Assembly (NCBI GenBank): GCA_030704615.1
Contig: CM060734.1
Coordinates: forward strand, 19,530,001-19,594,000
DNA from: Takakia lepidozioides
Lineage: Eukaryota; Plantae; Bryophyta
Direction of reading: 5' to 3'
Length of the DNA: 64,000 bases
Shown: positions 1 to 64,000 of the stretch, piece by piece
Layout: every line of letters starts with the position of its first letter
Numbering within the stretch: position 1 is the stretch's first letter
The notes under the pieces: model-generated
What the model was told of the DNA's origin: nothing
What the model saw: only the letters and a program-made list of their open reading frames with translations
The model's database searches: none
Made by a program: the position numbers and the translations under genes

Positions 1-548
1 AAGCCCGACCACATCACGTTTGTGTGCATTTGCAATGTGTGTGCAAACCTGTCAGCATTGGAAAAGGGCAAAGAGGTCTATGGCGACATTGTCAGATCTG
101 CAATTGTATCAAATGTCATTCTGAACAATATCCTCGTGGACATGTATGAAGGGAGTGTTCGACGGTATAGCTGAACGAGATGTGCTGTCGTGGAGTGCAA
201 TGATTGCAGGATATGCACAGCAAGGGCGCGGGATGGAGGCTTTGGAGACCTATGAGCAAATGATGTGCGAAGGGGTGAAGCCCGCACTTTGCATTGCATG
301 ATATTGAGGAAGAGCTTAAAGAATCGTCTCTTTGCCACCACAATGAGAAGCTGGCCATTGTTTTTGGGCTTATCAACACACCCTCTGGGATGTCTTTGGG
401 GATCATCAAGAATCTTCGGATGTGTGGTGATTGCCACACAACCACCAAATTCATCTCAAAGATAGCTAAGCAAGAGATTGTTGTACGGGATGCCAACCGC
501 TTTCACCACTTCCAAAATGGTGTTTGTTCTTGTGGGGAGTATTGGTGA
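1..548 (+). pseudogene. 3' end of PLS-class PPR-DYW RNA-editing factor, disrupted
   Basis: Frameshifted L/S/P motifs (KPDHITFVCICNVC.., DVLSWSAMIAGYAQQGRGMEALETYEQM). These are joined out of frame at about 284 to a DYW domain: [47 protein letters not shown]. The E domains and PG box are missing. Confidence 0.9.
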
Positions 549-38558: not shown

Positions 38559-38871
38559 CGGAAAGAATTTAAGTATGTCCCAGGCAGGACGCCCCAGGGT
38601 TAGAGAGAGAAGAGAGGAGAAGAATAATTGCGTCTGCAGGAGGCCGAGAGGGTCCATTGGGCACTGCAGAACCAGGAGAGAGAGAGAGAGAGAGAGAGAG
38701 AGGACAGCACTTATTAAACTTGCTTGCCATAGACTTCTCTTGCCAGGTTTGGATGGAGCAGACAAAAAGACAGGAGATTCAATGGTGGCCCGGATAGCAG
38801 CTGCGGCACACCCACAACAATGGGTTCCAGGGGATTGAGTGTTGGTCTGAGAGGTTGTCTTGTAATAAAGC

Positions 38872-41800
38872 ATGATGTTGATACCAGCACTGGGAATGGA
38901 ATGGCAGGATCGGGCTGGCACGGTGATCCAGGAAGATGGATATGATCTGTGCTCTATACACACAAAGGAAGTTGATAAGGTTGAGCGACAGTTTGAGAAG
39001 GTGGGCAGGGCATTCTGTGAAAACGGGAAAACGGAGCCTGTCAATGAAATCAAGCAATGCGAGAGTGTGACACAATTTGAGAGACAGCGGAAAGAGCTGC
39101 TAAAAGAGGCTGAGCAAGTGACGGAGACAGAGGATCTGCGGATAAGAGGATATGAACCACAGCTGGATGAGGCGGCTTCACAACAAGAGAATAAACAGAA
39201 ACGAGAACAGTGGAGGAAAGAGGCTGAAGAAGAGGAGAGGAAGCTTGATCTGCAGATCAAGGTGCTCTAATGACATTTCATAACGTTTGTTTATCACAAG
39301 ATCGTTTTGTGGGAAGTTTGCTAATCCTGGTACTTATAACTAGCAAAGAAGGCCCATGACGGAGTAGCGCACTCTTGAACATAGATTGAACATGTCTAAA
39401 ATTAGGTGAATAAGCTATTCATCAAACCAGCAATGACAAGCCATCTGTTTTGGAGAGTTCTACCACAATAAACATTACCCACGGAGTCCGCTTTTGTAAA
39501 TCACCTTTAATGGCAAGGAGAGTACTCTGTCTTACAAAGCTTACATCGAACTACTTCGTTCACAAGAGGGATGCCTCATCTATCTTTCTTGTGTCCATTT
39601 GATTGCTGTCCCTTCTCTTTTATGCCCCAATCCGATCCTCTAGAACCCTCTCAGAGAAATGGTTTTCTTGAATAGCAAAAGATCTCCTCTACACATAGTG
39701 TGAAACTGAGTGCAGGAAGCACTGGACAGTCGGAAGGAGGACTTGAGACGGATGCATGAGGAAGAAGAGACTCTGGGTGAAGTTAAGAGGTCCCACATGC
39801 TACTTAGGCTGAAAGAAGAATCACAAAAAGAAGAGGAGACGATGATGAATGCTGAACGGATCACCATGTCAAGGAGAGTACAGAACAGAATAAAGATGGA
39901 GGAAGGAACTTTGATCAGGTTACTTCTGTGGCTGATGCTTTTGTACAAGGCTCTCATCTTCTGCACATCAACCAGATGGTAACTACCAAATAATCATAAT
40001 CAAACATGGCTACTTTACGTACCACCTACTGGACTCCACTGAGGTTCATGTAGGATTGGATCCCGAAAATCTTAATTCCTTCAAGCTATGGTGGTCTGTA
40101 TGCAGGGGAATGAGAATGCAGATGCTAATGAGAGTGACAGAGACAACAGACCCTGAGAAGTGTGTCTTCCAGGAGGAGGAGACAGTGATACTTGTCATTT
40201 CCATTTGAAGGGTGTCTAGGAGTTCTGCAACAGACATTTTTTAATGAATTTGCTTCTGTGGTCTCATTGCAGGAACAGTTAGAGGCCAAGGTTGAGGCTG
40301 ACCTAGCACTACAGAAAGAGCAGGTCGAAGGAGGAAAGTCACATGACACATATTTTCAAAGGGAATTTTCAGGCCAAAGACATGGGTGACCAGAGTCACC
40401 AGGAAGGGGTGAGGACAGTACAGAACAAGATCACAAGGAATTCCTTCAGTACTACTCCATGAAACCCCATTTGGATGAACGAGAGGCTTGCCCCAGACCA
40501 GACTTTCAGTGTGAACAAGAGCACTCTGCTACAAGCCACGCTGCAAGAAAAGAAGAGAATTCTGAGTTTGAATTTCATTTTCTTGTCACCAATGGGTCTG
40601 AGCCCCTCAGCAATAACCGATCAAGGGAGTCAGGCTGTGGTCAATTAAAGGAGAAAGGTGCTCAAGGGAGCGTGGAAGCATCGGAGGGAGAGATTATGAC
40701 CATGGCTCAAGAGTTCAAAACTGATCTCATGGAGGAGAAGTTGAGATTGAGACGAGAGATAATGGACAAAGTCGTGAAGCTAGTAACAAGTGTAGTAACG
40801 AGTGATATCATCAGTGAGAGTCTTAACGAGGCCCAGTCAATAAAGCCAGGTCAACTGGCTCGATCAATACAAAGGGTGATGGCAGAAGAGAGCAGACTTT
40901 GGCGGTGTGTACTTAGGGACGCAGTAGAAAAGTACCAGATGCAAGGTGTGTGCAGGAGTTGGCACTCTCTTCAAGCTTCTGATGCCTTCTTTTCCCTGCA
41001 GTTGTCTGTGTCATAGTCACACCCCTCATTGCTACAGTACCATGTTGTGTTCATCTGCCTCATGCATTTTAAACTCAATCAATTGAACGGTTAGATGAAT
41101 TCCTTCTTACAGGCAAATTTTGGTTCGACCACACTGAGCATGCATTCCTTATAGATAGAAATATGATACGTTGGCATGTTGAGCGCAGAGAATGCACATG
41201 AGACTGAAGAATGCCAGGAAGATAGTCGCTGGCAGGAAATGTAGAAACCGAGGGCATCATGACCATACTCCCAGGGAATCTTAATCGAATCCCTCATAGA
41301 GGCAAGAGATTCCAATCTGCTTTCTTGGCTGGTTTCGAGTCTGGTAAGGCTACCTTAGGATGGCCCCATTTGACATGGAAAAGCAGACTGAAAGATCAGC
41401 TATTCAGGGAAGCTCTCAGAAGATTGAGTTTAGTCAAGGGACAAGAGCGGTTGACACAACTACCTGGAAGTTCCTATTATACCACAAAGAGAAGAAGCTT
41501 TCAAAGGCTGAAGAGCAGTGGTGAAGTAGAAATCAGGGAGGACATCACTCCATCGGATAGAGACACCAAATGTCTGAAGTCATTGAATTCGACCGAAAAT
41601 GAACTGGAGATTGTCCATGGGTGCAATTCACAGGACTCCAAACCCAGCCAGGTCCATTCTACTCTAGGAATGAAGTTGATTCCCTGCTCAGGGGAGGGCT
41701 ATGAATTGGGGTCAACCAATTCAAGTGGCCAAGCAAGTCTAGAGGGAGTACAGTTGGATGGTGAAGGGCTGGACCTCTGGGCACATGACAAAGGTCACAG

Positions 41801-43894
41801 TGTGGAGGAGGTGGCAGATATCAAGCAGCCCGATGTAGAAGCAACTTGTCATGAGCCAAGACTACCAAATCCATATTTCTGTTTGCTAGACAGTACAACA
41901 AATCAAGCAGTTGTGCTCAAGATCATTGAGATAGAGAAATTCAACTTGCCAGAAAGCAAACCAGAAGCGCATGCAATAGCTGAGGATGGGAAAGTGTTTG
42001 ATGATAGGGCAGAAGAAAGAAGTCCCAAATCACGCCCAGTTCTGTTAACTTGTAGGTTTCAGGAGCCAAGAAGAAAGGATGTTGAACACAGCATCAAGCC
42101 AAGGAGGTGGCCTTATCAAGCAACAGATACTGATGTTGAAGTAAGGATGTTACAAGCTACTATAATGCAATCAGTTGAGGAGGACCAGTTGGGTGCCATG
42201 CTAGCTGAAACAGGCATTGAAATGTGTCATGAAAAGAAGACATTCTGGCAAAAGCTCAAATCTGGATGGCGGCGAAAAGAAAGATGCTCGGGCTTTGGAA
42301 GACTGGAACCAAGCTGTTCCGTTGGAAGGTCAACAATGACAGACTAGCTGAAAGTAAGCCAAGAAATCGACAAAAGAATTCACAGACTGAACAGAGCCTG
42401 AGCTCCGTTCTACAGGTTCCATCAACAGGCTCATGGTGGTCTTGTAAAAGTTCGAAGAGAATAAGAGAGAAATGTAAAGGAAGACGTGTGCCATTTAGTG
42501 GTTTGCAAGAAAACCAAAGTCTGGGCTCCAAGATTGGAGAGGCTACTATAGAAAATGAAGTCGAAACATCAAATCTAGAAATCCATGGAGTGGAGAGTGT
42601 CTGCAGGGAAATCGTTTCAGCAGGTGATTCAACTGTTTCCTACAGAAGTTTTAAACTCTTTCGAAAGAAGCCAGAAGGCATGTCTGTGAGAAGCATTCGT
42701 TTACAAGAGGATCAGAGTATGAGGACTGATATTCGAGACATCACTATAGAGATGAAAGAAGTAATGAAGTCAAAGCCAGCAATTCAAGGCTTGTGGGAGG
42801 CCCATAGTCAATTTGTCTCATGGGTGTTGTGGGGGGCAATGCAGATATTGGAGATGCCTTATCGCTTGATCAGTTCACTGTCTCATGGAGATAGGGTAAG
42901 AGAGCAAACAATTGGGCCAGATAGAGAGCCAGCTAAATTTGAAGGATCAGATGCTATAGCTGTAGTCATGATACCTTTGACAGAAGACCACCAGGGTAGC
43001 TACCTAGGAAGTGTTGGTAAGGTGGTGATGGTCGACAGAAGAAGGCTTGCTGAATTGAGAGAAGACAGTAAGGCAGTCAAGACAGTAGAGATAGGCAAGT
43101 GGCAAGGCGAGCACAAGGAGCCTTCATGGACAGGACGTAAGGACAAATCCTTGTTGGCAAGCCTTTTCTCTAGAAAATCAAGTTGCAGTAGAAATACCAG
43201 TTCCAGTTCTATTCAGTGCTTAGCAGGGGAAATTTGGGATGATGCACAAAGGTCAGAAGGAGAGATCCCTCTCTGTGGAGGCAGGGTTCTGCATAGAGCT
43301 TCCGATGTCCAACAGGATGTGGTGGCAACCAGCAGTTTGTTCAGGAGATTGAATGAATATGATGAAGCAGACATGGCTAAGGAATCCAATTTCTCATTTG
43401 GGAACTGGAGTGATGCTGTGTCTAGAGAGTCCACTGCCAGAGCCTCACTGGCTGATGCCACTTGCTCAAATGGGATTGTGGAGGCGATAAGTAGACGTCA
43501 CCTTCAGGTGGGATCTGGTGATCCAGGGTTGCGATGTTTGGTCTCTCATGAGGATGAGAGGCAGCAGGTTTGTTATGGGCCTCTGAGCCCCCGTGCTTTT
43601 GAAGTGGTTCAGACCAGCACCTCAAACCTCATCACCATTGACACAATCTCTGATGAAGATGCAAGGCGGCAGGTGTATTATGGCCCTCTGGCCCCCCGTG
43701 CTTTGGAAATGGTCGAGGGCAACACCTCAAACCTCATCACCATTGACGCAATCTCTGATGAAGATGCGAGGCAGGGTGTTTCTTTTGGCCCCCCGAGCCC
43801 CCATGCTCTGGAAGTGGTCAAGACCAACACCTCAAATCTCATTACAAGAGACATGATCACGCAGGAACTATTGGACTCGGATGGACATTGCTGA
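38872..43894 (+). CDS. Unknown E/K/R-rich coiled-coil and low-complexity protein; probably partly pseudogenised
   Basis: A same-strand chain of purine-rich ORFs (38872-39270, 39710-39982, 40459-41016, 41259-42347, 42266-43894). No family recognised; exon structure not resolved. Confidence 0.45.
43544..43858 (+). repeat. Three tandem 105-bp (35-aa) coding repeats
   Basis: Units start at 43544, 43649 and 43754. Approximate consensus SDEDARRQVxYGPLSPRALEVVxxNTSNLITIDxI. Confidence 0.9.
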
Positions 43895-46358
43895 AAAAAT
43901 CAAGGCATGGCCACTGTCCACAATTTCAGCTGTCCAAACCTGGTTCTTGCAGTGACTAATGAGGGGCAGAAATGCCATGTAGTACCAATTTGTAAGTGGC
44001 TTGCACTGCTTTGTTAAGCAAGAAGAGCTAATTCTTGATTGGGGCTTACTTGAGGCTACATGAGGACTCTGCACAGCAGTTTCAACAGTGATCACAACGA
44101 ACAATAAGATCTGATTCTCCTGCAACTTGAGAAGACTCCTCTTGCCTTCCAAATAGAGTGCAAGAAGATTTGGATGTTCTGTCCACCAGAATTTATGGCA
44201 CATGTAAGCTGATTCCCCATTTCAATTACAGTATTTATGTCAGAGGTTTTCATATATGAGTTTAAGTGCCTGAGGATCGACCCCAGTGCACGCAGCATAC
44301 AGATGGCACAGGGGGGGGGGGGGGTATGCTCTTGGCTCTTGGTATGATTTTCCTGCTCCTTGTGGCCCAGGAGTTTGAAGGCCTTTACTTTCAAAAGTTT
44401 GAATTAGAATGAAGGAGCTTGGATAAAACAAAGTTGTCATGGATTTTTCCAAGCTGTTTGCTCCTCTGTGCTCACTGTGTGTAGGTTAGAAAATTATCTT
44501 TTTTCCTTTCTGTCTGAAATGTTCATGTCATGTGTGTTGCAGGGATGCGAGCAGTTGGGGTTTTCAGCTGAGGAGGAATAGAGTCTATCCGACAGTACCT
44601 GCATCAAGGACAGCACAGGCCTGGGGAATGTGCCTGAATCAAGTCACATCATTGGTAAATAATGTTTACACATTATTTCCTCTTAATCAGACCTTAGATA
44701 TTGGAGGAAAATGGCAATGAACTGTAGAGTCTTTATACTCCACAGTGTAAGGTCTCCAAATCTGATTCTTCAGGACCCACCATATCACAAAGCCTCTGGT
44801 ATCTTGAAGTGACGTCACTGGTCAATACCCTACCATAGGATATTTTGCGGTGCTTCGGCCTGCAGTTGTGCTTTCTTCCACTCTCTAAGACATCACCCCT
44901 CTGAATGGATACCTCCATAGTGCGAATGTACAATGTCATGTGTTAGCTTCTACCTTTCCATGGACTTCAATGCGTTGTGATTTGTCCTCCCTCAGTTACT
45001 CTGACACTTTCTTGAACCCTCTGCTGGATGGATAGTTCCTTGTCCATTAATCTGGAAAGGACGGGATAGGTATGGTGGCAGGAATGAGCTGAAAGAGGCA
45101 GGGATAGAGTGTGGGCACAAAATGATGCTGGACAGGACCAAGCTGAAGAGCATCCACAAGACACAATGATTGATAGCTACAAGAGACCTGCATGGCTTGA
45201 TGCCCGATTGGAGACTACTATAGTGAAAATAGTAGTCTGCAGTCAATTTCAAGAAAGAATCTTGCTCTTGCGTGCACTTTTGATCCCCTGCTTCCTACAG
45301 GCCAAAGTACTCGACCAGCTGACAGTATCCATCTATTCTGCCTGCTTCAATTCCAATTTGCATGAAAAATCTCTCCTGTGCACCAATGTGGAGCGCAGGA
45401 AAGTACAAAGACTCAGGCTTCCAAAGGAACCCTGCCCATCCATTTACACGGAATCGGCAATTGAGATCCAACATCAGACTTGTTCATGTGTCAGTTTTTC
45501 CGATACATTGTGGTCAAGATAAGGGTACAATCTCTCTCTGGTGTCTTAATACAACTCAAGGTACTGCTTACGCATGGGGAGGTCTAACTGACCACCAAGT
45601 ATATGCAATCAAGGGTGGAGATGAATTCGGCGAGATACCCCATGTTGCAGAAGGGGTGCAAGAAGAGGGTGTTTCGACCAGAAGAGGGCCATGACCCTTC
45701 AAAAAGAGTTTTCCAAGAGTCATAGCTTCTGAGTTCAAAGGACACTATATATTTCCATGGGATTTCCAGCCAGAATGTTTCACTCATTTGATGAAGACTT
45801 TTTCTCAGGATTGTGGAGCACTCTAGTCTGCATCTACCCTCTGGCAAAATCATTTTTTGCTACTGTAGAACTGATGATATGGCAGCTGATATTTTGACAA
45901 AGCCCCTTCCGAAACCCAAGCATTATGAGAAACTCTGAACACTTCAGTCAGCGACAGACAAAGTTGACCTGGCCTGGCCAAACTAGATTTTGAGTTCAAG
46001 TTTTTTGTTGTGGACTGGGTGGTGCAGTAGCTTTCTTCTACACCTATTGCCCAGCTCGAGTTGGTACTATCTGATTCTGGAGCTTCCTCCTTTGCGCAAG
46101 CTTGCCTTGTAATCGGCAATCAGTCTCCAGCTTGGGACTCCTTACCAAAAAACAAAAGATTTGCAGGTCCAGATCTTCATCATCTTTCTGGTAGTTTTTC
46201 AACATCGTAACTTTGTTGTCCGAGGGGCATCAAGGGTCTGCTCTTACAAGGCAGCGAAAAGAGTGTCCAGATAGCGCGATCATCTGAGTGGAATTGCTCG
46301 AGAGCAGAAAGTGATCACAACAACAAGTCAGAGTTTTGGTTCCTGAAGAATTGGAAAA

Positions 46359-49867: not shown

Positions 49868-52800
49868 ATGGCTGGTCTGGAGGGATAGCACCAACAATGC
49901 AGGAGAAATTCACAACGAGGAGGAGAAGAAGCCTTTGGAGGGGGGGAGGTCACATTAATCTGAAAGTGAAGGGTCAGGTAATGGAAGCCCGTGGCATTTT
50001 TGTAGGGTTTGTTTCCCTGTTGGGCTTGAAGTCGTTAGAGAATGGCACTTCTGGGCACGTGAAGATGCTTTGTGCGGCAGGTAGTCTGACAGAGCCTCTA
50101 TAGACTTTAAACCAAGGAGACATTTCAGCAGATTCGGACACATATGTCTGTCTCTTGCATCAAGATGGACGGTCTGGAAGCTGGAAAGCAGATGCACACT
50201 CACGGATATGTCATCCTGTAATCTATCCGAGACTATGCATAGTGTGTGGAATGCGCAATCCGGCAAGAACGGACGGGACCTGTATGTTGCCACTTCGGAT
50301 GCCATGGTCCGAGCGCTTTCGCAACACACACGGTACCGGGATTTCCTTCGTGGACGCGGTTCTGGTAAGGGGCCAGACAGGGCAGAGTTGCAGTTGAGGG
50401 CTGCAAACAGATGCAAAAATCCTGTTAGAATGGCAAAGGTTGTAAACGAATGCACAGTGGGAACACCTTTGCAATCCAGACATCCTCATCTAGAAGTGGA
50501 TTCGCTCCAAAAGTTTTTCTACTCGACACCCTTGTCAACATGTATCTTAAGTGCGGGAGCATCATGGATGCTCACCAAGTGTTCAACAGAATGCTTCAAC
50601 GTTCTTTTGATCACGTGGAATATAATGTTGGCAGGATTCACCAAGCATGGGTGTGGTAGGAATGCTTTGGAGAGCTATGAGCAAATGCTGCTCGAAGGGG
50701 TGGGTTGGACGATATGTGGTTTCATGGAACGCCATGATTGCAGAATATGCTCAGCATGGGTGTGTTAGGGAGGCTTTCGAGATCTATGAGCTAATGCATC
50801 GGTTGGGGGTGATGCCCAACAGGGTCACTTTCACTTCTGTGCTCAATGCATGTGCCAGTCTAGGAGACCTAGAGAAGGGCAAAGAGATCATGCTGATATC
50901 ATTAGAGGTGAAATTGCAGCAGATAGCATTCTGGAGATTGCCCTCACTGACATGTTTGTCAAATGCGGGGGCATGGAGAATGCGCGTCAAGTGTTCTACA
51001 AAATGGCGGAACGAGATGTTGTATTATGCTCCATGATTACAGGCTACATTGGAGGTGGGTTCTCAAGGTCTATGCCAGTGTGGCAGCCCTTGAGAAGGGC
51101 AAAGAGATCCATGCTGACATTATCAAGCCAAAATTGTGTCAGATACCAAATGTCATTCGACAGTATGGCTGAACGAGATGTGGTGTCCTGGAGTGCGATG
51201 ATTGCAGGATATGCACAGCAAGGCTTTGGAGACCTATGAGCAAATGATGTGCGAAGGGGGTGAAGCCACATGACATTTGTTTGCATTTGCAATGTGTGTG
51301 CAAGCATGGGAGCCCTGGAAAAGTGCAAAGAGGTGCACGGTGATCGTCAAATCCATCATCTTCAAATTATGTCTTAAGCGATCCATCGGAAGTTCCAGAA
51401 AGTAGTTGAAAAGCGATTACTTTTGCTCATGTTAGGGCAATTCAATTTTAAGCTTAGTAACGTAACCTCTCTCTTTGCCAAGCTACTTGTTTTGAAGTGG
51501 GGTACATTTGCAGGTTCTTTCCTGTCCAAAAAAATCGAGCACTGTGGGAGCATTGAGGATGCCAAGGGAGTGTTCAACCTATGGCTGAACGAGATGTGGT
51601 GTCGTGGAACGCAATGCTTGCAAGGTGTGCACAGCAGGGGCACGGGATGGGGCTTTGGAGACCTATCAGCAAATGATGGGAGAAGGGGTGAAGCTCGACC
51701 ACATCATGTTTGTGTGCATTTGCAGTGCGTGTGCAAGCCTGGCAGCCTAGAAAAGTGCAAAGAGGTCCATGGTTGCATCGTCAAATCTGGAATTGTACCC
51801 GGTGTCATGTTGAACACTGCCCTAGTGGACATGTATGTCAAATGTGGGTGCATTAAGGATGCCAAGGGAGTGTTCGACAGTATGGCTGAACGAGAGGTGG
51901 TATTGTGGAGTGCGATGATTGCATGATATGCACAGCAGGGACGCATTTGGGGAAAGCACGTCATGTTTGTGTGCATTTGCAATGCTTGTGCAAGTCTGGC
52001 AGCCCTGGAGAAGGGCAAAAAGGTGCATGGGGATATCGTCAAAGCTGGAATTGTACCAAACGTCATTCTAAACACTGCCCTGGCAGCTCTAGAAAAGGGG
52101 AAAGAGGTCCATGGCGACATCTTCAGAGCTGGAATTGTACCAGCTGTCATTCTGAACAATACCCTGGTGGACATGTTTGCAAAATGTGGGTGTATCTAGG
52201 ATGCAAAGGGAGTGTTCGACACTATGGCTGAACGAGGTGTGGTGCGTGCAGGGTATGCACAGCAGGGACGTGGGATGGAGGCTTTGGAGACCTATGAGCA
52301 AATGATGTGCGACGGGGTGAAGCCCAACCACATCACGTTTGTGTGTGTTTGCAGTGCGTGTGCAAGCCTGGCAGCCCTGGAAAAGGGCGAAGAGGTGCAT
52401 CGTCAGAGCTGGAATTGTACCAGATGTGATCCTGAACACTGCCCTGGTGGACATGTATGCCAAATGTGGGTGCATGGAGGATGCAAAGGGAGTATTCGAC
52501 AATATGGCTGAATGAAATGTGGTGTCGTGGAATGCAATGATCGCAGGATATGCACAGCATGGTTGTCATAGGGAGGTCCTGCAACTATTTGAATGAATGC
52601 AAAAGAACGGCTTAAAGCAGTATGTGTTCTCTCTGTATGCAGCCACACTGGCCTTCTGAATGAAGGAAGACGCTACTTCGATTCCCTGATTCAAGATCAT
52701 GGTGTCACTCCGACAGTATAGCACTTTGGCTGCATGGTGGACCTTCTTGGACGTGTGGGACAACTGGATGAGGCAGTGGACCTGAACGTGCGGCAACATC

Positions 52801-53048
52801 TATCCTCAAGTGGAATGAACAGGATGTCGCGACTTATGTTGCTATCAAACATCTATGTTGTAGCTGGCAGGTGGGTTGATACTGTAAAGGTGAAAAGAAT
52901 GATGAAGGTCAGAGGGGTTGAAAAGGAGCCAGGTCGCTGCTGCATTGAGGTTTGCAACAGGGTGCACACCTTCGTTGTAGATGACAAGTTGCATCCCAGA
53001 ATTAAGGAAATCCATGCTGAGCTGAGAAGATTGTCTGGAAAGATGAAG
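49868..53048 (+). pseudogene. PLS-E class PPR gene, heavily frameshifted and truncated before the DYW catalytic core
   Basis: Many near-identical P-L-S triplets (VVSWNAMIAGYAQ.G, VKPNHITFVC..ACASLAALEKGKEVH, NTALVDMY.KCG). E-domain and PG-box sequence LLSNIY..GRW..KEPGRCCIEV..HPRIKEIHAELRRLSGKMK stops abruptly at an insertion. The 5' boundary is approximate. Confidence 0.9.
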
Positions 53049-54890
53049 GTGATTTGCCAGGAGCCGTTTTCCAGATTACCTATGATTAAAAAATAAAAAA
53101 AATGGATTGTAAGAGCTTGCAGTCATGAATTTATTAAATAATTTCTTGAAAATTAGGACCGCAAGCTTTGGCGGTCCTGATTTATCCCATTTTTTTTTAA
53201 TATTTCGGGACCGCCAAAGCTGGCGGTCTCGATTAATTATATTTAAAAGAAAAATCAGGACCGCTACAGTTGGCTTTTCGGAATTTATAAAATAAGTTTT
53301 TAAAAAATCTTTGGCGATCCCGATTTATTAAATTTTTTTTTTAAATTTGAGACCGCCCGATTTATTATATATTTATTTTTAAATTTGAGGCCGCTAGATC
53401 TTGCGATCACAATTTTTTTTCTTAAAATAGTTTCTTAAAATTTTGGACCACCAGATATGATATGGCGGCTTACTGGTAAACTGTACAATATAAAAATTAA
53501 AATTAGAAAATAATTACAAAACATAAAGTCAATTTTTGAGGTGATGTGACGCACATCTGGACATGACTTCAAACGTGACGCTGACGTGTTAACGCCACAT
53601 CACGTCGTTTTGTGCAACTAGGGGTGATTGAATGAAAAAGGTTAAAAATGATTTCTAACAATTCCGTGTATTATCAAATTAGTGCCCAAGATAAATGATG
53701 AACTCATTTTCTTGTGGAATTGTCCTCTGGTTTTAATCCGACAACATATAGGGATTACAAAAATGGTCAAAGTGTTTCAATGTAGGCAATTGTAAAACTT
53801 GTGATTTCTAGATGTTTTTATAGTACGTCTAAATATCATCACTGATTGTTATCTATTCAAAAACTTTGGTTTGTATAGAGATCATTGCCTTCACGTGTGT
53901 CAAGTGTCACTAAACATTATCATGAACCACAACCAACTAAACAAATCACGTGCTACCACCCATAGAAGATGCACCCGAACCATCAGTGGCTTTCACACAT
54001 CCGCAAACAGAGCGGCTATCTGAAGCTTGGGTTTGCATTACCAACTCCCGACCTATTTCCTGATCGCTTTGAAAACTCTACGAGGTGATTCTCTCGGTCA
54101 TCGTCATCTTTAGCGTCTCCATTTATTTGATTCCATAACCAAACTCTTTGATGGCACTTGCAATGGCAGTAGAACCTCCAGACAAATGTCGCTTATTTGA
54201 ATTTAGACGACCTTGCACACCTGACAACTTACAAGTTGCCGTCCTATGAGTGACAGGTGCAGTGGAAGGATTGCCGGACGTAGTGCCTGCCATCACATTT
54301 GGTGTTGTTCCAGAACCAGTGCCTCTAAATATATGAGCCTGTAGTCGTAAAAGACTGAATGGGACATTATCAAATTGTGTATCTGACACGAATGCAACAT
54401 CATCAAGATCAATGGTTTGGGGAGGATTGTTGCGCACTCGCTAGTCAATACCTCCAAGAATCTCATTCACCTTTGTCATGCATCCAAGAACGCCATCAAA
54501 TGTTTGGTACCATGGCCACTCAGTAGGAGGAGCACCTATTGCATTACATTTTTGTTTTTTTTTCTTCTCCATACGCATCCTTAAGCTTGTTCACCTTGTC
54601 GCGGCACTGTTTCCAAGAACGATGGGGCGCATTGGGAAACCCTACATTAAGTCTGTCAGCAATGTATGTCTAATCTTTTGCTCTCAAAGGTGCACGCTCG
54701 TGATCCCAATATTTTTCCTCCCAAAGATCTAACAACAAAAGGGTTGTATCATTTGTCCAACCTCGTGCAACATTCTTCTTTTCAATATGAAGGTGTGGCA
54801 TTTTCACACCGACAATCACTAGCAACTGACTACTTTGAATTGAGCAATCGCTTTGAGGACCTTCCAGTCGAAACGGGAGGGTGAAGCTCC
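53049..54890 (-). mobile_element. DNA transposon fragment (PIF/Harbinger- or MULE-like) carrying a trihelix Myb/SANT pseudogene
   Basis: AT-rich end with repeated GGACCGC..GCGGTC hairpins (53155-53470). About 54790-54440 reads RGWTNDTTLLLLDLWEEKY..AKD*TYIADRLN..RSWKQCRDKVNKLKDAY..EWPWYQTFDGVLG. Confidence 0.65.
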
Positions 54891-55413
54891 GCAGGTTGGA
54901 AAATGTGTGCAAGTCCATAGGACATGTCAATGGATTGGAATAATATGAGTGAGTAAGCTGGAATGTATGGATAAGCAAGGCAAGAATATCTTGGGGTATG
55001 GCATGGTGTGCGCATGCCATTTCTAGTCGGGTGAGGGATCGTGGCTTCTTGGGGGGGGTGTCTTTGAGGTAGCAGTCTACGAGCCAATATAATTCGGTCG
55101 CGAAGTCTTGTTTTGGGGGTTGTAAAGATTGTGGGTAGGAGTTTGCAGCAGAATACTTCTCTCACAACCATGTTAATCTGTTATTAGGAATGAGTCCAAT
55201 GAAGCGGCCGTGTTGAGCGTAAATATTGGAAAGGCGGGGGCCCATGTGAATTAGAGGTTGGTCATGCTTGACATCTTTGTCGGGGTTACACTCAGTTATG
55301 CAGATGTGCACGTTAGGGGCAGAGATCAGCTGGTGAATGTATCGACTATCTGTAAGTTGGGCGGGGGTGGTGTGTTGTTGGTGAATGTGTGTTAAGTAGT
55401 CTATATTAGTATG

Positions 55414-55620
55414 TTTATGGAAAGAGGTGAGAAGGGCAAGATTGTGTTCGGGGTCACAATCGTCTTGTGGGCCAAATAGGTCATCTTCTATCTGCCATGT
55501 GTTGTCTTCTGAGGAATAACCAGCCCATTTACAGTGGTAGTAGGTGTCAATACAGGTGGCACCGAAGGCATCAATTGATGTTTGGGTTTTGACTCCTAGT
55601 ATGGCTTCAATGATGTATGC
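55414..55620 (-). other. Chromodomain within LINE ORF2
   Basis: AYIIEAILGVK..DTYYHCKWAGYSSEDNTWQIEDDL..LLTSFHK. Confidence 0.88.
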
Positions 55621-58600
55621 ATTATTATTGTCATCGTTGTGTGGAGAAGATGGGGGGGGCGCTGTGGTGAGTGGTTGGGAGTGGGTGGGGGAGCCTTGCA
55701 TATTAGGTGAGGGGTTGAATGGCACATTCGGGTTGTGGTCAAGTTCGGTATGTTGTGTATTAGGTAGATGAGAGGGGGAGCCGGGTTCTGTGACTGTGGG
55801 GGTATTGGCGGCATATGCCGTTCTAAGTGTTTGGTAGATGGAGGCAGTAGGGGAGGATCGGTACTGGGGGAGCAGGTCTTGAACCGTATGGGGATAGTAG
55901 AGACATGGGATATCGCAGTGGAGGGTGCAGATTGCTGAGGGATGACAGAAGAGGGTTCGGAGATGGTGTAGGTATTGAGTGGTTTTGGTCGTAGCTCGGG
56001 AGAATTTAAGAGTGAATTCGCTTGGTTTTAAAAGTCGATGGCCGGAGGCGGTGGTAAGTTGGGTGAGGGTGGTAATTTGACGTTCTTTGAAATAGGTGAG
56101 GATGGGGATTTTTTGTTTCGGATTAGAGATGTCGAATTGTGATAAGAAAAGGCTTGTGAGCCATGCGCATTCTAGGGGTGACGAGGTGTTAGGGTAATCT
56201 GGCAGGCCGGTTTGTATACTAATTTTCATTTGGCGTAGGATGAGTATTGTGCGGGCAGTAGGGGAGTGTAGGCAGGCTTGTGGGTGCAATGATGATAGTG
56301 AGTAAATGCTATTGTATTTTAATGCGAGGTGTTTGAGGAGGCCCTGATAGATGATACCGAGACGTCCAGGATCGTTGAGTGCTTCTTTTAATTGTGTGCC
56401 TAATGTGCGAGCGTATGATATGATTAAGGGGCTAGAACCGATTCCGTAGCTGTCAGTTGGGAGTTGCGTGAGGGCATTAGGGGTACTAGTTGGTAAACCA
56501 CATACGCGCTTTGTGAGTTGAATAATGTTTTTATCAAGTTTTTTTATGTCTGGGAAAGGGTGTGGAGTGAAATGAGTATTGAATTTGTGTTTGTAGTACG
56601 GATTGAATGATTGATAGTTTCGGACGGATGGCAATTGGGGATTTGAGCAGGGCCAGACTTTTGGTAGCTAGTTTGGATGATGTAGAGTCTTTTTGGATGT
56701 GCCAAGTGATGGAGGGTACTAATTGGATACCCAGGTAGGTATATGGCTCATCTGGTCCCAGGAAGGGGAAAGGTGTGTTTTGGTAGTGTACATAGAGTTT
56801 GCAATGTGAGGCTATGGCTGCTTTAGTGAGCCGACTGTGAAGTGTGGCGGCAGTGATGGCGCATTTGTGTAAGCTGAGTTCCATGCCTGACCATAGATTG
56901 AATCGAAATAGTTTGTTAACTTGTCGGTTTAGGTGTTGTGGTTTGTGTGCTAGGATGGCGAGATCGTCTGCATATGCTGCAGCTGAGATGTCACTTGAGG
57001 AGGTTTTGTATTGATACCCAAGTTTGCCACGGGCGAGCCAGCGGAGTAGGGGTTCTAGGAAGATAATGAATAGGTAAGGACTTAAGGTGTCTCCTTGGAT
57101 GGTTCCTCGGATGTGTTAAGATGTGATGTCCATGTACGTTTTTGAGTACGGGTAAGATAGCCACCATTTTGTTTTGAGCGTGGAGTTTGTGGGATTTCAA
57201 GAGGGGCAGAGCAGGTGGCAATGACACTTTTGGTCATTTCTTTCATTGAAGTTGTGAGTATGATCTCGGCTTCGATCCAAGCTTTGTCAGGGGATTGCGC
57301 GAGGTTTGCTTCGGAGAGTATGTCGGAGAGTTTTAGCATAAGGTGTGAGGATGTTGGTTGGAAGTGCTTTAGAAATGTGACTATGTTATTGTAGGGGAGT
57401 GGGGATAAAATTCTAGATTGCGGTGGTGGAACTTACATGGGTGGAATGGGTCTAAAGGGGATGAGGGATGGTGGGATGGTTACTGAAACGGGATAATGGT
57501 CTGAGTTGCATAAACTATTAATGTGCACATGACTGTTAAGGTACGTTGGGATGTCATTTTGTGTCTTGAGGTAGAAGCCGTCAAGAAGGCTTAAGGATGA
57601 GTAGTTGAGTCTACCTTGTCTAGAATAATGGTGGTCGGCGGGTATATAATGGAGGTGGTGTGATTGAGTAAATTTGGCCCATTCCTGGTCTGCGGGGAAT
57701 GGAGTTTTGCGTATACCGTTGTATGTGTGACCCATCAGGGCAATGTCCCTAATGAAATCACCTGCTTGAATGTAGTGCTGGGAGTCGGTGGAGGATTGGG
57801 TTAGTGTGTTGGAGATGGTAAATAGGATATCAGGGATCAGGGGGAGATCTTTGGCGTGTGTGGACATGTACAAGTGTATAAGTATAATGGGGAGGAGCGT
57901 GGGGAGGTGGAGTTTGATGATTTGAAGGTGTGATCGGAGGGGGAGAGCGACAGGTATTTTGACCGTGGTGCTAGGGGAGTGATGTGTGCGGAGAATACCA
58001 AAAACCACCCCGCCCCGGGTAGGATGGTATGGCGCGGAACGTCTAGTTAGGCATTGTGCGGCTGTGAATGAGCTACCATACAGCATATAATAGGCTGGAA
58101 GGAGTTTGTTGATATAAGAACTATTGGGGTTGTGTGTGTCAAGTTTAGTTTCTTGTGATAGGATGATATGCGGGGGTGTAGACTCTGTGAGATGGATAAG
58201 GCTTTGAATGTTGGTGGCAAGTGATCCTACATTCCAAGTAAGTATGTTGAGTGCGTGTGCTTGCTGTGAAGAGGAGGTGTGTGGGGGATTGTGGGATCTT
58301 GGGGGGGTTGGAGGTGGGTCACTGGTGGAGCTGGGCATGCAGGGTAGGGTAGTGGATGTCGGTATCATGGACGGGGGTTGATATCCAGGGATGCCTGTCC
58401 TGGCTTGAAGGGTTGCAGTGAGATTTTTTTTGGAGAGGAATGGGAATTTGTTGGCGACGATATCTAGTTCGTGAATGGTTGCAGGTGGGTGTGCCAGATG
58501 TTCGCCGAGAATCCTATGGATTACTCCAGGCTGGGCTTGTAGTAGGCCAAGAGATTCGTGGAGGTTGTGTAGGTAGCGTGGGGGTGCTAGATATCTGTGA

Positions 58601-58980
58601 GGTAGCGTGGGTAAATCCTGCAATTGTTGTAGTAGTGAACAAATGTATGTGTTTGGTTGGGTTTGAAAGTAGTCGTTGCATATTGAGGGTATTGGGGAGA
58701 TGATGATGATTAGTGAGAATATGAGGTGTTGTATGGGGTATCTGCTAAGTTTATGGGTGGCACTGACTAGAAATAGGTGTTGGCAGGCAGGGAGCCCAAA
58801 GGTGGCAATTGGGTGTGTGGGTTTGCGGTTATTGGTGGAAGGGGTGGGGAGAAAAGGAGAGAAGTGGCCACTAAGGTATTGATATGCAGGTACGAGTAAA
58901 ACAGTGTCTGTTTGGAAATATAGTGCATATCTGGCTTTATGGTCTTTTGAAAGCTTGTTGATGATGCTAGTGATGGTAGA

Positions 58981-59040
58981 GGGGCCTGGGTTGGGGTGGA
59001 TGTCGCCGCAGCTTAGTAGTATAAGCGTTTCACAGGCAAG
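58981..59040 (-). other. 2A-like (StopGo) peptide motif in LINE ORF2
   Basis: Translates as LACETLILLSCGDIHPNPGP, in the same open frame as the APE ORF 57433-58623. Confidence 0.8.
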
Positions 59041-60907
59041 TTTATAGGGCTTAAAGTGGGACGGTGGATGATGAGATGAGTGTTTAGATGCAAGAGGTTT
59101 TTGGTGATATCTCCTATGTGGGCAGTGGGTTATAAGTTGGATTGTAAGGGAACAGGGGGTAGGGGTGCGTGGGGGGTAGCTGATAAAAAGGTGTATGAGG
59201 GGGATAGATTTGGTGGTGTCGTGGTGGGGACGAGTGGAGCTGGTTTTTTTTGTGTGTGGGGGGGGGGGATTTTATTGTGTTGAGATTAGTGTGTGGATTC
59301 ATCCGGTGGCCATGGAAGGGGTTTGTTGTGCGGGAGCTCATATGGTGGGGTTGAATGTATGGTGGTTGGGGAATATAGATTTAATTAGAGTGGGGGAGAT
59401 TGGATAAGTGGGCGACATATTTGGATGAATGAGTTTGGGCAGAGGCGCGGATGAAGGAACCTGATTTTGGATGAAGTGTCGGTGATGGGTGAGAGAAGTG
59501 TGAGTGCAGGGGATATGGTTAGGGGTGCTCCATGTAGTGGCATATTATAAAGGTGTGGGGGAGCATGAGTCTACATAGGTGGGATAAGGGGAGCCGTAAC
59601 GGGGAGGGTTATGTGTATTTAGCTGGGTTGGATGAGGTACATTTATCCAAGTTTGCATGGTGTTCATGGGTAGGAATATGGGCTTATTATTTTTGTATAT
59701 GGGTATAATTGGGCAGGTAGTGAATGGATGTTTCCGCGGGTGACTGAGATGACGTTCGGTGGGGGTGGCAGTTATTAGTGCGGGGAGTATAAGGTGAGTA
59801 GGCGAGTTGCGTGGATGCATGGCGTTGGGTGAGGACGTGGATGAACGCATCCACGAATGAATGAAATACAGGTTGCGTGTTACGGATGTATGAGTGTGGG
59901 AAGGTATGATTTTATTTGGTGCAGGTGTATGAGTGTGGGGGGATATGATTTTATTTGTATTGGGGCTATTAGTAGGACCGTATACGCGGTAGGACCGTTA
60001 GGAAGTCTAGCGGATAATATGGTGGGTAGTGTAGGTGGACTCTGAGGGCCGTGGTGTGGGAATACAGGTTGAGGTGGACCGTACAATACACGAAGCGTGG
60101 TGTTGGCGTATGGGGATTTGAACACCAGGCTCTGGGGGGTGCCAGGCAATAAGGCCAGGAGACTTGAGGTGGCGGGGCGGGATGGGTGCAGTGATATAAG
60201 GTGCGAGGGTGGTAACGGGTGGGGGAATTTTATACAGATTTAAATTTGGGAGCATGTGGGGGGGGTCAAAAATAGAACGGGAGGGGTCGTTAATTTCAAG
60301 GGTGGGGAAGGTTGCACGCGCGGTGCATCCGTGGGTGGTAGGGTCAGTGTGAGTTGCAGGTGGGAGGGGCCAGCAGGTGGCGGGGTATGGTAGGTCCACG
60401 CTGGGAGAGGCGGGGTACAAACGGTCTCGGGTGCAGATATAGCTGGGGTTGAGGCGGAAGACGTGGGGGTGCTGAGATATAAACGTGCGTGGGGGAGAGT
60501 CAGCAGCGATCTGGTTATGGCACGTGGCGTGACTAGGACATGTGGCTAGGCAGGTGGCAGGACGTGGTTGGTCTAGGTTAGTAGTGATTGAGATTGATGG
60601 CTTTATTGAGACCGTGGGATGTGATTGTAGATTATTTTGGTGCATCGACAGGGTGTGTAGAGGTGAGGGAGAGTGGTGACAGGGGACAACAGTAGTGCAG
60701 AGTGACGATTGAGAGTAAGTATGTGAGAAAGTGAGAGTTTGTATTGAGTGTGCTATCGTGGTGGAATCATTCAGAGCTGTAGAGTAACATTTTGAGCAGG
60801 ATACATTGAAACATAAAAGTAAGAGAAATAAAACAACACACAGAAGAGAATAGAGTGCGGCTCGGAAGCTAGAGTAAGTCTGTTGGGTGTAGCTTGGCCC
60901 CAGGGAA

Positions 60908-63465
60908 TTACGCATGAGCATCGTTGTGTGCAACTGAGAGAGCGAGAGCTGCTGTAACGGCGTGTGTGTTGGGAGCAGGCGTCGATTCTCCGCTGCGTTC
61001 GAGGTTGACAGCCACGGTGGGGAGGCGTGATTTGGCTTGTTGGTGCAGCATTGCATTGAGTTCGGGTGCCGCATGGAAGAAGTTCGTTATGACAGGGCGG
61101 TGGCGATGAAAGAGAGCGCCAGGCTCCACAGGTGGTGGAGTCCCGTTGTCATGAGTAGAGGTGGAGCCAGGGAGCTGGGGCAGCTTTGCGAGAATGAGGT
61201 CCGCGTGATGGTAAAAGTTTGCCAGATTCTGGCCCAAGGACTCGGTGATGGATTTGTGCAGCGATAACATGTACTTATGGTATTCTAGGTGTTGGTGTGT
61301 GATAGAGTCTGCAAGCCGGGTCTCCATATCGTTGATGTCGGTGCGCAGGTCTGTACAGATAGATATAGAATGTGCCTCGAGCTTCCGGTCAATCTCTGCC
61401 ATCCAGTCCTTGTTCTCAGGTTGACGTTTATGCAGAGGCTGGATTGTGATGGTGTTTACAGTATCAAGAAGGGCTTGATTGATATTACCAACTTGCAATC
61501 TTTCGCTGTTGACGGTGGGGTGAGGCCCTTCAGACTGTTTTGGTGCGGGGAGAAATTGATGAAGCGGCCAAGCATAGCAACATGTGGGCTGTTGTACCAT
61601 TTAGTATAAATGATAGGGTTCTTGCAGGTCACATGCATCATCCCTATGTGTTTGACTCGCTCGTTGGGGGGCATCTGGCAAAAGTAAGTTTCGGTAATGT
61701 TGTCGGCACCCATCACACCTTGCAACTCCTTGAGAATGGTTTCTCGGGGGTGAAGTTGACACAGGTTTTTAACCACGACTGTGAGCGCGTCTCTTTCTGC
61801 AATCGCCTCCTTCTCCTTCTCGGAACCTTTGGCTCTTGTTTTGCCCTGCTTTTTGATCCGGATCTTTGGTTTGATTAGGACGTTATCGATACGGATCCCC
61901 TTGTCCAAAATTCGAGTTCTGGTATCCTCTGTGGCGAGATAGATAAAGGTGAAATTGGTGTCGGGGTTGGACTTGCCGACGTATAAGATTTCAAAGTTGT
62001 CGTCGTGATCAAATGTCTCCGTGATAAAGTGCATGGCCAGCTGCGTTCCTAGCGTGCCTTGTAGTACTTCGTCATTGCAATAGAGGGACAGCCATTCGGA
62101 GGTGGCTAGGAGATCATAAGCCTTCTTGACTTTTCCCTGCATTTTGACACCTGGCTCTACCTCCAACACAAAGGGCCTGTCTCCTCGAAGGAGGGCCAAA
62201 CCATCCCGTGCAGGATGGAAAAGCTCAACTTTGATAGTGCCAGACCATATCTGCGTAGTGGGTTTTAAGTAAACAGAGAGAGGAACGAAAAGAGTCGTAC
62301 CTAGTGGGATGTTCATGTCCATGAATCGTTGTGTGGGGCGGGTGTGAACCAGTTCTTTGGGTAGCTCGTAGGTAGAGTCGAAGCGAATAGTAATGTGGTA
62401 CGGGTTTGCCGGGAGACCGGTGTTGCTGGTGGTGAGCGTGCCCTTGGGCAGCTGGGTGAGATGGAGGAATTGTCCGTCGCTCCCATCCGGGCGCGTAGCA
62501 GGATAGAGGCGTTGAGGTACCCGTGGATATGCCTTCTTGCAGTTGAGCAATTCGTCACATTCTGTGGGTGGAGTGCCAAGCTGGAGCAGTTGCTCCCTAG
62601 AGCGGGTTTCCTTGAGTACAGGACGATTGTTCTCGTAAGCATATGTTTCCATGTTCTGAAATCCATACCATAACATGAGATGCAGCTTGGCACTCTCAAC
62701 TTCCAGGCCTTGGTGCTCCGGTGCGACAGATTGTTGGCTTCTCGATTTCTTTGTTTCGGATGGTGCCGGGGTAGTGGCACTGTGAAGCTCGCTTGAAGTC
62801 CTTTTGGTGCGCAGGTGACCTTGGACCTGGACTGTGATGAGTGGGTGACTGTGCGCTGTAGCGAGTACGTCAGCCGGCATGTCAGGCATGTCGGAATCAC
62901 CATTTTGTTGATGAAGAGCTTGACTCATATTGTTGTGTGTGAGCCTGAGAGTGGGTGGCGTTGGGGCAGGCGGATTTACTGTGAGCGACGAGTCCAGGAA
63001 CTCGGGTTCCATTGCTGGAGTGGCGGGCGGATGGCTGGCAAGAAGACTTCCTGGCGCCAGTTGCCTACTGAATTGCTGTCTGGGTCGACCCGTGAGAGAG
63101 GGAACACCGATTGCTGAAGAGAACATAAGAATAGGCGGTGGGGAGGATGATTGGGGAGTAGCTATGTGTCGATAGATACTAGCAGTGAGCTGAGCAGACA
63201 GGAGGGGGAAGATGTAATCTACCCGGGTGTGTAGTTCTGGATTTGTTGAGTAAGGGGGGGTGGAGATGGGGAGTTTTGAACGTAAAGAGTCCAACAAGCA
63301 AGTGAGCGGGGGGGGGGAGAGGGTGGCGGGATTTATATAGATTGAGAGTTCGGGAACTGGGGATGCCACAGTAAGCGTCGATTTTAATGCGGGTAGCAGT
63401 ACTGAGTCTAGTGTAATGATGTTTGAGAGGGCCGGGCAGATGGAGGGGCGAGCTGCGCACTTCAC
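60908..63465 (-). pseudogene. LINE ORF1 (RRM-like domains plus C-terminal coiled coil), one frameshift near 61510
   Basis: ORFs 61456-63465 and 60908-61600. RNP-like segments LTVVVKNL..HIGMMHVTC..GRFINFSPH are followed by the helical INQALLDTV..DINDMETRL. Confidence 0.65.
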
Positions 63466-64000
63466 TTAGTTGGGGTGCGGTGGAGAACGGCAGATTTAGC
63501 ATGCGTATCAATTCGTTGTCAGTGTAGCAAAGGCTTGAGTGATCAGGAGCTTTAAGAGCTGGGTATTGCCCAATGCAAGTTGGCAGCGGAAGGATAAACG
63601 AAGAGATTATGAAGGTGACTCGTAGCATAACTTTTGTGGGGCAGCACCTGTGCGAATGCACCATGTGTGTGGCCAGCGATGGAGAGTAAGACAGGGTAGA
63701 AAAATTAAATCAAGGAGCTGGCGGGATCTGGCTCTTGTGAGGGCAGAAGTGATGATGGATTAAGTAGTGGGAAGCGTTGTCAACTGTGAGGGTTATGCCA
63801 TGTGTTGACTGGCTGTAGGGGTGGGGCCAGTGGGGTGGCGAGAGAGAGGTGGCTGGGTGCACTGCATAGCTTTTATGTTCGAGAGACCATGAGTTATGGG
63901 TAGGGAGCCTGTATGTTGTGTTGCCAGAACGGCATCGTTTGGAGAGAGCCGTGCTATGGCTGTGTGTGCACGAAGGATTACAGGTAATCTTAGGAGTAGG

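Follow-up and report, generated by a model that had tools for sequence, protein, structure and literature searches.

A probable Dualen/RandI-type retrotransposon copy in Takakia lepidozioides and the modular polyprotein of its family

[quoted passage not shown] Intact members of the family encode a separate open reading frame 1 (ORF1), followed by an ORF2 in which a leader, a 2A motif, an apurinic/apyrimidinic-type endonuclease (APE), a reverse transcriptase (RT), a Cys cluster, a chromodomain, a PCIF1-like domain, RNase H, a CCHC motif and an R2-type restriction-like endonuclease (RLE) succeed one another. An earlier note, made from the sequence of the window, had proposed a RandI/Dualen-type long interspersed nuclear element (LINE) in a land plant at this place, which is supported by the joint presence of APE and RLE in relatives and by an RT nearer to R2 than to L1. 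The processing and chromatin-reading roles that it ascribed to the element would apply to the family and not to the window locus.

The Takakia copy and its fuller relatives

Relatives were sought with phmmer among 1.84 billion representatives, using as query a 501-residue piece of the window that extends from the RT thumb to the 3' break. The search returned 213 matches at E <= 1e-3, nearly all of which were short pieces of ENA, JGI or Logan assemblies. Six independent loci (L001, L007, L008, L009, L010 and L011) were fetched, the relatives that share the block order, at 27-50% identity, coming from five other assemblies; L003-L006 are the same locus as L001, and L002 is a second copy at 96% identity. 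L001 is nearly full length (~10 kb) and presents, in this order, ORF1, leader, 2A, APE, RT, a chromodomain-like block, PCIF1_WW, RNase H, CCHC, a PD...ExT block, a 3' hairpin and (TTC)5. In tblastn its pieces fell on the minus strand of the window at 62577-61987 (ORF1a), 61812-61504 (ORF1b), 59019-57652 (2A and APE), 57109-56176 (C-terminal RT) and 55785 to ~54860 (chromodomain and PCIF1-like domain).

The same order of blocks was found at all six independent loci, at 27-58% identity, with L007 and L008 retaining the series APE-RT-chromodomain-PCIF1-like-RNase H-CCHC-RLE. Moreover, single uninterrupted ORFs run across the domain junctions: 802 residues in L010 (P0178), from RT motif A through the chromodomain to the PCIF1-like domain, and 751 residues in L011 (P0172), comprising the thumb end, Cys cluster, chromodomain, PCIF1-like domain and RNase H. 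Nested insertions, which the earlier note had named as a possible source of the individual pieces, are therefore excluded, ORF1, 2A, chromodomain and methyltransferase-like block being colinear and the junctions of the chromodomain and PCIF1-like domain lying within single ORFs.

RNase H and RLE, predicted to lie downstream in fuller copies, were both present there. RNase H was recognized by PF00075 (RNase_H) in L001 (40.6 bits) and in P0134 (63.5 bits), and is also carried by P0172 and P0176. The C-terminal CCHC-RLE module has 314 relatives, many on large contigs, in whose alignment the motifs CxxC...H...C, RHN, CxC..RCHC, KPD and QFIEFTY.ND are near-invariant; CCHC and RLE motifs are conserved in L001, L007, L008 and P0134. 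A sequence profile of the module had no match in the PDB, and only the fold search succeeded. With an AlphaFold2 (AF2) model of the RLE module of a relative (predicted local distance difference test score, pLDDT, 79.3; predicted template modelling score, pTM, 0.80), the seven best PDB matches in Foldseek were all R2 proteins (E 4e-7 to 1e-3; template modelling score, TM, 0.51-0.59); next came PD-(D/E)xK nucleases, cap-snatching ones among them. P0134, a single ORF of 3777 residues and ordinary composition, has the arrangement 2A-OTU-APE-RT-PCIF1-like-RNaseH-CCHC-RLE; its RLE motif reads RPDIMLI...IIEVTY and its PCIF1_WW match is sub-threshold. Evidence of mobility is provided by the L002 copy and by the relatives of the RLE region. 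The 3' end of L001 (13120-13165) consists of a GC-rich hairpin, CCGGGTC-CCTCA-GACCCGG, to which (TTC)5 is directly joined; poly(A) is absent.

The Takakia copy is considerably more eroded. An ORF survey placed it on the minus strand, with its 5' side at 64000 and its 3' break at ~54895-54860; all long stop-free stretches within 64000-54673 lie on this strand, and at ~55000-61000 the sense strand contains 8-15% G and 32-45% C. The ORF2 frame extends from 61086 to ~54895, that is ~6.2 kb, in agreement with the length of about 6 kb estimated before. Its last conserved residues, ...THSYYSNPLTCPMDLHTFSN (HTFSN), finish exactly at 54895, and nothing of the element is left 3' of the PCIF1-like domain's first strand region; no tblastn match to RNase H, CCHC or RLE was obtained anywhere in the 64-kb window, and no second copy of the element was found elsewhere in it by blastn. 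An internal deletion of ~1.1-1.2 kb (~375-390 residues relative to L001, L010 and L011) has removed the N-terminal RT half with domains 0-A. At the junction the post-APE linker is kept up to ...GGYLTRTQKRTW and is followed directly by RT motif B, RGTIQGDTLSP, and no part of the element matched the N-terminal RT piece of L001 in tblastn.

Two frameshifts were located, one at the deletion junction near 57110 and the second near 56560-56580. Ten in-frame stops lie within 63465-57085: the spacer of 372 nt (61087-61458) that separates ORF1 from ORF2 shares their frame and contains three of them (61458, 61287 and 61089), and ORF2 continues in the ORF1 frame over 61086-57085 with seven more. One further stop (55164-55162) replaces a Trp that is conserved in relatives. 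The window locus is a dead, 3'-truncated and internally deleted copy without functional consequence. The blocks listed in the earlier note, their order and the end coordinate 54895 were right; the strand, the internal deletion, the two frameshifts and the ten stops had gone unmentioned.

The sense strand of ORF2 is extremely G-poor, with 9.5-11.6% G in the Takakia copy (55165-61086, minus strand), in L001 (5263-12900) and in L007 (7567-13600), and Gly, Ala, Val, Asp and Glu jointly account for only 13-14% of the residues encoded by these regions. Avoidance of CG/CHG methylation sites was considered as an explanation and is not supported in the window, with 31.9 CG per kb in the element versus 26 in the rest of the window.

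Modules of ORF1 and ORF2

The open stretch of ORF1 comprises 669 codons (63465-61459, minus strand, as for all features of the element), and its conserved part, with putative tandem RRM-like (RNA-recognition motif-like) modules, occupies 61459-62700 and is followed by a stop codon at 61458-61456. The separate ORF1 noticed before is indeed conserved: its four homologs (P0308-P0311) matched at E 1e-58 to 2e-26 and all share the position of the stop, and tblastn aligned it to ORF1 of L001 at E 6e-16 and 3e-10. In the PDB, a profile of the ORF1 family matched the tandem RRMs of nucleolin (E 3e-5) and PRP24 (1e-3), in alignments spanning the RNP1-like FAFITL and the RNP2-like TLVVKNL of ORF1, which makes an RNA-binding protein of RRM-like type plausible; no match of the family to Pfam RRM models or to any other Pfam entry was observed. 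The base composition of ORF1 (G 21%) is ordinary, unlike that of ORF2. The 5' region from 62701 to 64000, which crosses the window edge and contains the 5' untranslated region and/or a non-conserved N-terminal part of the ORF1 frame, is again G-poor and C-rich on the sense strand (G 14-15%, C 36-39%), and no similarity to relatives was detected upstream of ~62700.

ORF2 opens with a low-complexity leader rich in Pro, Thr, Ser and His (59026-61086), essentially as described earlier. It contains 6 stops in the ORF2 frame versus 17 and 27 in the other frames and 18.7 +/- 4.4 expected from first-order Markov simulations, and is held open in the ORF2 frame well past expectation. Neither sequence nor length of the leader is conserved; those of the relatives are rich in Lys, Thr and Asn, and the only fully bounded one (L001) has ~220 residues.

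The leader is followed by a 2A-like motif, LILLSCGDIHPNPGP (GDIHPNPGP; 58981-59025), which is the sole NPGP in the six frames of the 64-kb window. The motif was correctly spotted by the earlier note, although it carries His at the Glu position of the D(V/I)ExNPGP consensus. At the homologous position L001 and L011 read GDIESNPGP, L008 GDIETNLGP and L009 GDIEINSGP, the 2A region of L001 being LLKCGDIESNPGP, and P0134 has GGVEKNPGP at residue 843. These forms suggest that a canonical 2A was the ancestral state of the family and that the window form, like those of L008 and L009, has decayed. The possibility that the pre-2A region of single-ORF Dualens represents a fused ORF1 was examined with hhalign and rejected, the ORF1 profile aligning to P0134:1-900 with a probability of 0.2%.

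The stop-interrupted pieces of the copy were searched one by one, and on these raw pieces only RVT_1 and Chromo were matched by Pfam; for ORF1, the leader, the APE piece and the last piece of the window nothing was obtained at E < 0.1. The APE (57472-58254, ALNILTWNVGS to SDHYPVSVTIP) was recognized by homology to that of L001, whose leader and APE piece aligned to the window in tblastn with 31.6% identity over 462 residues (E 2e-38) and itself matched Exo_endo_phos with 25.8 bits at a cut-off of 24.5; the corresponding match in P0134 scored 34.4 bits. Within the window APE a weak N-terminal ExoIII match (E 0.056) was seen. Between APE and RT a remnant of the linker is left (57110-57471, with a stop at 57435-57433), in which CSAPLEIPQ...GGYLTRTQKRTW matches the linker start in L001, L010 and L011.

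The C-terminal half and thumb of the RT (56176-57109) start with motif B, RGTIQGDTLSP...LEPLLRWL, from 57109 and include YADD at 56974-56954. RVT_1 was matched with E 2.7e-15 over profile positions 117-204 only, whereas the complete RT of L001 scored 64 bits; both the APE and the RT of the earlier note are thus borne out, the latter by its C-terminal half. The window RT is 45-50% identical to P0002, L001 and P0178, and 38% identical to P0134 over 206 residues, versus an alignment of 41 bits over only 85 residues with the ordinary LINE in the same window. Searches of the PDB placed R2 ahead of L1 ORF2p for the window RT (E 3e-10 versus 0.01) and for the L001 RT (E 9e-18 versus 3e-7), and R2 was not preferred over L1 for the RT of the other LINE in the window. 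These comparisons put the RT of the family far closer to R2 than to L1.

The region between the RT thumb and the chromodomain (55621-56175; columns 300-460 of the family alignment A1) is a conserved post-thumb linker that includes the Cys cluster FCHPSAICTLHCDIPC (55953-55894) together with a spacer rich in Pro. The cluster, FCxxxxxCxxxCxxPC (55894-55953; A1 columns ~430-455), is conserved in most family members, had no match in Pfam and may constitute a zinc-binding knuckle.

The chromodomain (55474-55620; AYIIEAIL...YHCKWAGY...NTWQIEDDLF), likewise named in the earlier note, matched PF00385 at 55617-55474 with E 4e-6 and 27.0 bits at a cut-off of 25.1; P0017 reached 36.6 bits. In the AF2 model of P0172, model residues 11-54 form three strands and a helix, with block pLDDT values of 85-89 over residues 11-50, and Foldseek aligned the model to the CHD6 chromodomain with a probability of 0.96. 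The aromatic Y/W/Y cage (Y...W.GY) is complete in the window copy and in P0017. We propose that the domain would read methyl-lysine marks. Alternatively, the block could be a structural spacer that reads no histone mark, leaving the two nucleases alone to direct integration; this is consistent with the lack of the third cage aromatic in most relatives (WILS, WTQP or WQVP) and with the missing Pfam Chromo match in L001. It is nevertheless unlikely, as the window lineage and P0017 hold the canonical cage and pass the Pfam threshold, and the block is kept in every lineage of the family that was compared.

ORF2 of the window breaks off within the N-terminal half of a PCIF1/CAPAM-like domain (54860-55473; ECNPDKD...RLTWL[stop]EKY...THSYYSNPLTCP..., interrupted at ~54895-54860). 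The chromodomain and PCIF1-like piece of L001 aligned here in tblastn with E 2e-31, and in relatives the domain was matched by PF12237 (PCIF1_WW) with 31.2-32.8 bits at a cut-off of 31.1, L001 scoring 31.2. An AF2 model of P0172:155-580, computed from a 29-row alignment (pLDDT 65.7, with block means mostly 70-86 in the core), had CAPAM at all of ranks 1-6 in the PDB (6irw, 6irx, 6irv, 6irz, 6is0 and 6iry; E 4e-9 to 2e-8, probability 1.00, ~260 columns), the next fold following at E 0.026. At the level of predicted structure, a PCIF1/CAPAM-type methyltransferase fold is confirmed for the family. The family profile furthermore aligned to the PCIF1-like region of P0134 with a probability of 96% (E 2e-9), and the chromodomain did not align. 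Since the profile meets P0134 over the PCIF1-like domain only, this module predates the plant lineage; the chromodomain seems to have been added afterwards.

N6-adenine methyltransferases carry a (D/N)PP(Y/F/W) catalytic motif, NPPF in PCIF1/CAPAM, after strand 4. The NPPF region is deleted in the window copy. At the inferred site the family has G[LY]A[HFY][PS][PHT][NDEY], with AHPHN, AHPPN, AFPTD, AYPTE and AHPPY as lineage variants and AHPG in P0134, while the neighbouring blocks SYYSSPLTCP, RDxIFGSxG and AIHWARxAA are strongly conserved. Because the inferred site is variable and non-canonical, the domain is probably a pseudo-enzyme: the possible methyltransferase of the earlier note is found as a fold, and its catalytic motif is probably absent. 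A PCIF1-clade methyltransferase domain in DIRS1 elements was likewise judged probably inactive by Iyer, Zhang and Aravind (PMC4738411).

Were the enzyme active, it would place a methyl group on N6 of the adenosine next to the cap in the element's own mRNA, or of some other adenine in RNA or DNA, so that the transcript is stabilised or flagged as self. Such activity would agree with the CAPAM fold, with conservation of the three blocks around the cofactor-side strands over long divergence, and with retention of the domain from algal-type Dualen to the plant family, which implies selection for some function. We consider it improbable, more so than a chromodomain acting as a spacer, because the residues at the motif site change from lineage to lineage, because the DIRS1 domain was called inactive on the same grounds (PMC4738411), and because no WW domain, which in PCIF1/CAPAM is N-terminal and binds the phosphorylated C-terminal domain of RNA polymerase II, was matched in Pfam scans of family members.

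Classification and proposed life cycle

PMC9977147 and PMC5029228 give the pairing of APE and RLE as the defining hallmark of Dualen/RandI. In the present family the APE lies N-terminal to the RT, RNase H lies between RT and RLE in the relatives, and a C-terminal CCHC and RLE accompany the APE in L001, L007, L008 and P0134, and by homology only in the window copy. Further traits are shared with Chlamydomonas DualenCr and RandI-1..5 and with cryptophyte Dualen-1_GCr: a very long ORF2, accessory N-terminal modules, predicted 2A peptides, such peptides being known from the Dualen ORF2p of Haematococcus (bioRxiv 10.64898/2026.06.17.732966), and a short microsatellite-like tail, (TTC)5 in L001 and (ATT)n or similar in RandI (PMC3747384). 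The family differs from these elements in its land-plant host, the hosts listed in the literature covered being green algae and cryptophytes only (PMC3747384, PMC4438587, PMC5029228), in a separate, putatively RRM-like ORF1, in a chromodomain between RT and RNase H, in the lack of an OTU, C48 or SET module, and in the extremely G-poor ORF2. The PCIF1-like domain is absent from the descriptions of Dualen in the literature covered, yet is found in the OTU-bearing, Dualen-type P0134.

Dualen was reportedly described at first as a single long ORF, from which the separate conserved ORF1 of the window and L001 departs; the latter is treated here as a variant feature and not as a defining one. An assignment to L1 disagrees with an RT nearer to R2, an RLE in relatives and a (TTC)5 tail in L001 instead of poly(A). 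No paper that reports Dualen from land plants, or that pairs it with a chromodomain or with a methyltransferase of the PCIF1 type, was found in the literature covered, which did not include Repbase/Dfam or the original Dualen/RandI papers; within the same limits, the combination that the earlier note did not know from land-plant LINEs has no published description.

Comparison with other retrotransposons places the individual modules in context. DIRS1 also carries a PCIF1-clade domain with degenerate catalytic residues in a polyprotein next to RT and RNase H (PMC4738411), but it uses a tyrosine recombinase and terminal repeats and has the domain after RNase H; in the present APE/RLE LINE it comes before RNase H. 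Chromoviruses of the Ty3/gypsy group likewise fuse a chromodomain to their integration machinery, and it directs their insertion into heterochromatin. Theirs is C-terminal and accompanied by LTRs and an integrase; in the present family it sits inside the polyprotein, with the RT thumb on one side and the PCIF1-like domain on the other, and is combined with LINE nucleases. 2A-like peptides are known in LINEs (PMC3708506), and in the APE-type Ingi/L1Tc and metazoan Rex1/CR1/L2 elements a similar L..L..GD(V/I)ExNPGP stands shortly upstream of the APE (PMC3708506); the differences are the land-plant host and, in the window copy, His for the conserved Glu. Finally, R2 (Bombyx, Platysternon, Taeniopygia) is the best PDB match both for the RT (E 9e-18) and for the linker-CCHC-RLE segment (E 4e-7, TM 0.51-0.59), and differs in lacking APE, RNase H, chromodomain and PCIF1-like domain, in its DNA-binding N-terminal zinc-finger/Myb domains and in its specificity for ribosomal DNA.

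Several points weigh against this reading of the locus and its family. The window copy is devoid of RNase H, CCHC and RLE, and its Dualen membership is derived by homology from fuller relatives. The assignment was based on domain layout and pairwise RT scores, in place of a tree of named reference RTs (Dualen, L1, RTE, Tx1). Pfam gave no APE match in the window copy. The 2A of the window reads GDIHPNPGP, and ribosome skipping is predicted from sequence. Most relatives have WILS, WTQP or WQVP for WxGY and lack the third cage aromatic, and the chromodomain region of L001 has no Pfam Chromo match. PF12237 matches in the relatives barely reach the cut-off, AF2 modelled the PCIF1-like domain with moderate quality, and a sequence-profile search of the PDB with A1 or P0134:2900-3260 found no PCIF1 chain; the motif IV site was placed by the model's fold topology and secondary structure instead of by superposing individual residues.

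A mosaic, in which a chromodomain from a chromovirus, a piece of PCIF1 of DIRS-like or host origin and an ORF1 from elsewhere had been inserted into an ordinary plant L1/RTE-type LINE or beside it, would suit a window rich in transposable elements, a copy broken by stops, frameshifts and a deletion, and an ORF1 with a base composition unlike that of ORF2, but is very improbable in view of the block order recurring at six diverged loci, of uninterrupted ORFs crossing the RT/chromodomain/PCIF1-like and chromodomain/PCIF1-like/RNase H junctions, and of an RT far nearer to R2 and to the APE- and RLE-bearing P0134 than to L1 or to the other LINE of the window.

For a Dualen/RandI-type element of this architecture, we envisage the following cycle. 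The element RNA would be translated, with ribosome skipping at the 2A freeing the leader from the enzymatic polyprotein, and would be packaged by ORF1p and ORF2p. The chromodomain would tether the complex to silent chromatin marked by methyl-lysine, as in chromovirus integrases; the two nucleases would cut the two target strands, the RT would perform target-primed reverse transcription, and RNase H would clear the template. The PCIF1-like domain would most likely serve for binding, its partner being the RNA polymerase II machinery or the element's own RNA at its capped 5' end, and not as a writer of N6,2'-O-dimethyladenosine (m6Am).

Genomic surroundings and significance

Directly 3' of the truncated LINE, a Myb/SANT frame (trihelix, Myb_DNA-bind_4-like) with an in-frame stop occupies 54547-54801 on the minus strand; it could be what is left of a gene, or could belong to a different transposon that took the place of the LINE's 3' end. 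On the plus strand, 50400-53100 contains a decayed pentatricopeptide repeat (PPR) gene of the PLS class with many frameshifts, an 84-bp tandem duplication (52000-52167) and E and E+ motifs (52722-53093). L010 has an intact PPR gene of the DYW type at its side. PPR proteins of the PLS/DYW type are a hallmark of land plants, and because such genes adjoin the window element and L010, the hosts of both are land plants. L001 is flanked by an ORF that by eye is germin-like.

Elsewhere in the window, a second, unrelated LINE extends over 12072-16300 (plus strand), broken into several frames (Exo_endo_phos 27.6 bits, RVT_1 59 bits), and an LTR retrotransposon of the Ty3/gypsy type is represented by its pol region at 28984-32508 on the minus strand, with RVT_1 at 95.8 bits, an integrase core and an H2C2 zinc finger. 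The region 38000-44000 (plus strand) shows positive GC and AT skew and open frames at 41226-42344 and 42233-43891 without a Pfam match, and is possibly another, unclassified repeat.

To our knowledge, no LINEs other than Dualen/RandI combine the two types of nuclease, and Dualen/RandI have been regarded as algal or protist. They have been used in arguing how LINEs with APE arose from LINEs with RLE. A diversified and recently mobile lineage in land plants widens their range. We advance tentatively, at somewhat under even odds, the broader proposal that land plants hold an undescribed Dualen-type (APE and RLE) LINE lineage with an independently gained chromodomain, which would make it the first LINE with the chromatin-reading module of chromoviruses, and with a PCIF1/CAPAM-derived pseudo-methyltransferase that is common to algal Dualens and was previously reported only in DIRS1. 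If this is true, two unrelated classes of retrotransposon would have co-opted the fold of the host cap-adenosine methyltransferase, a plausible purpose being recognition of their own RNA by its capped 5' end. The family also represents a source of natural, plant-borne 2A sequences. Two questions are raised by these elements: whether a chromodomain steers a LINE to silent chromatin, in convergence with chromoviruses, and why DIRS1 and Dualen both retain a catalytically degenerate copy of an m6Am writer.

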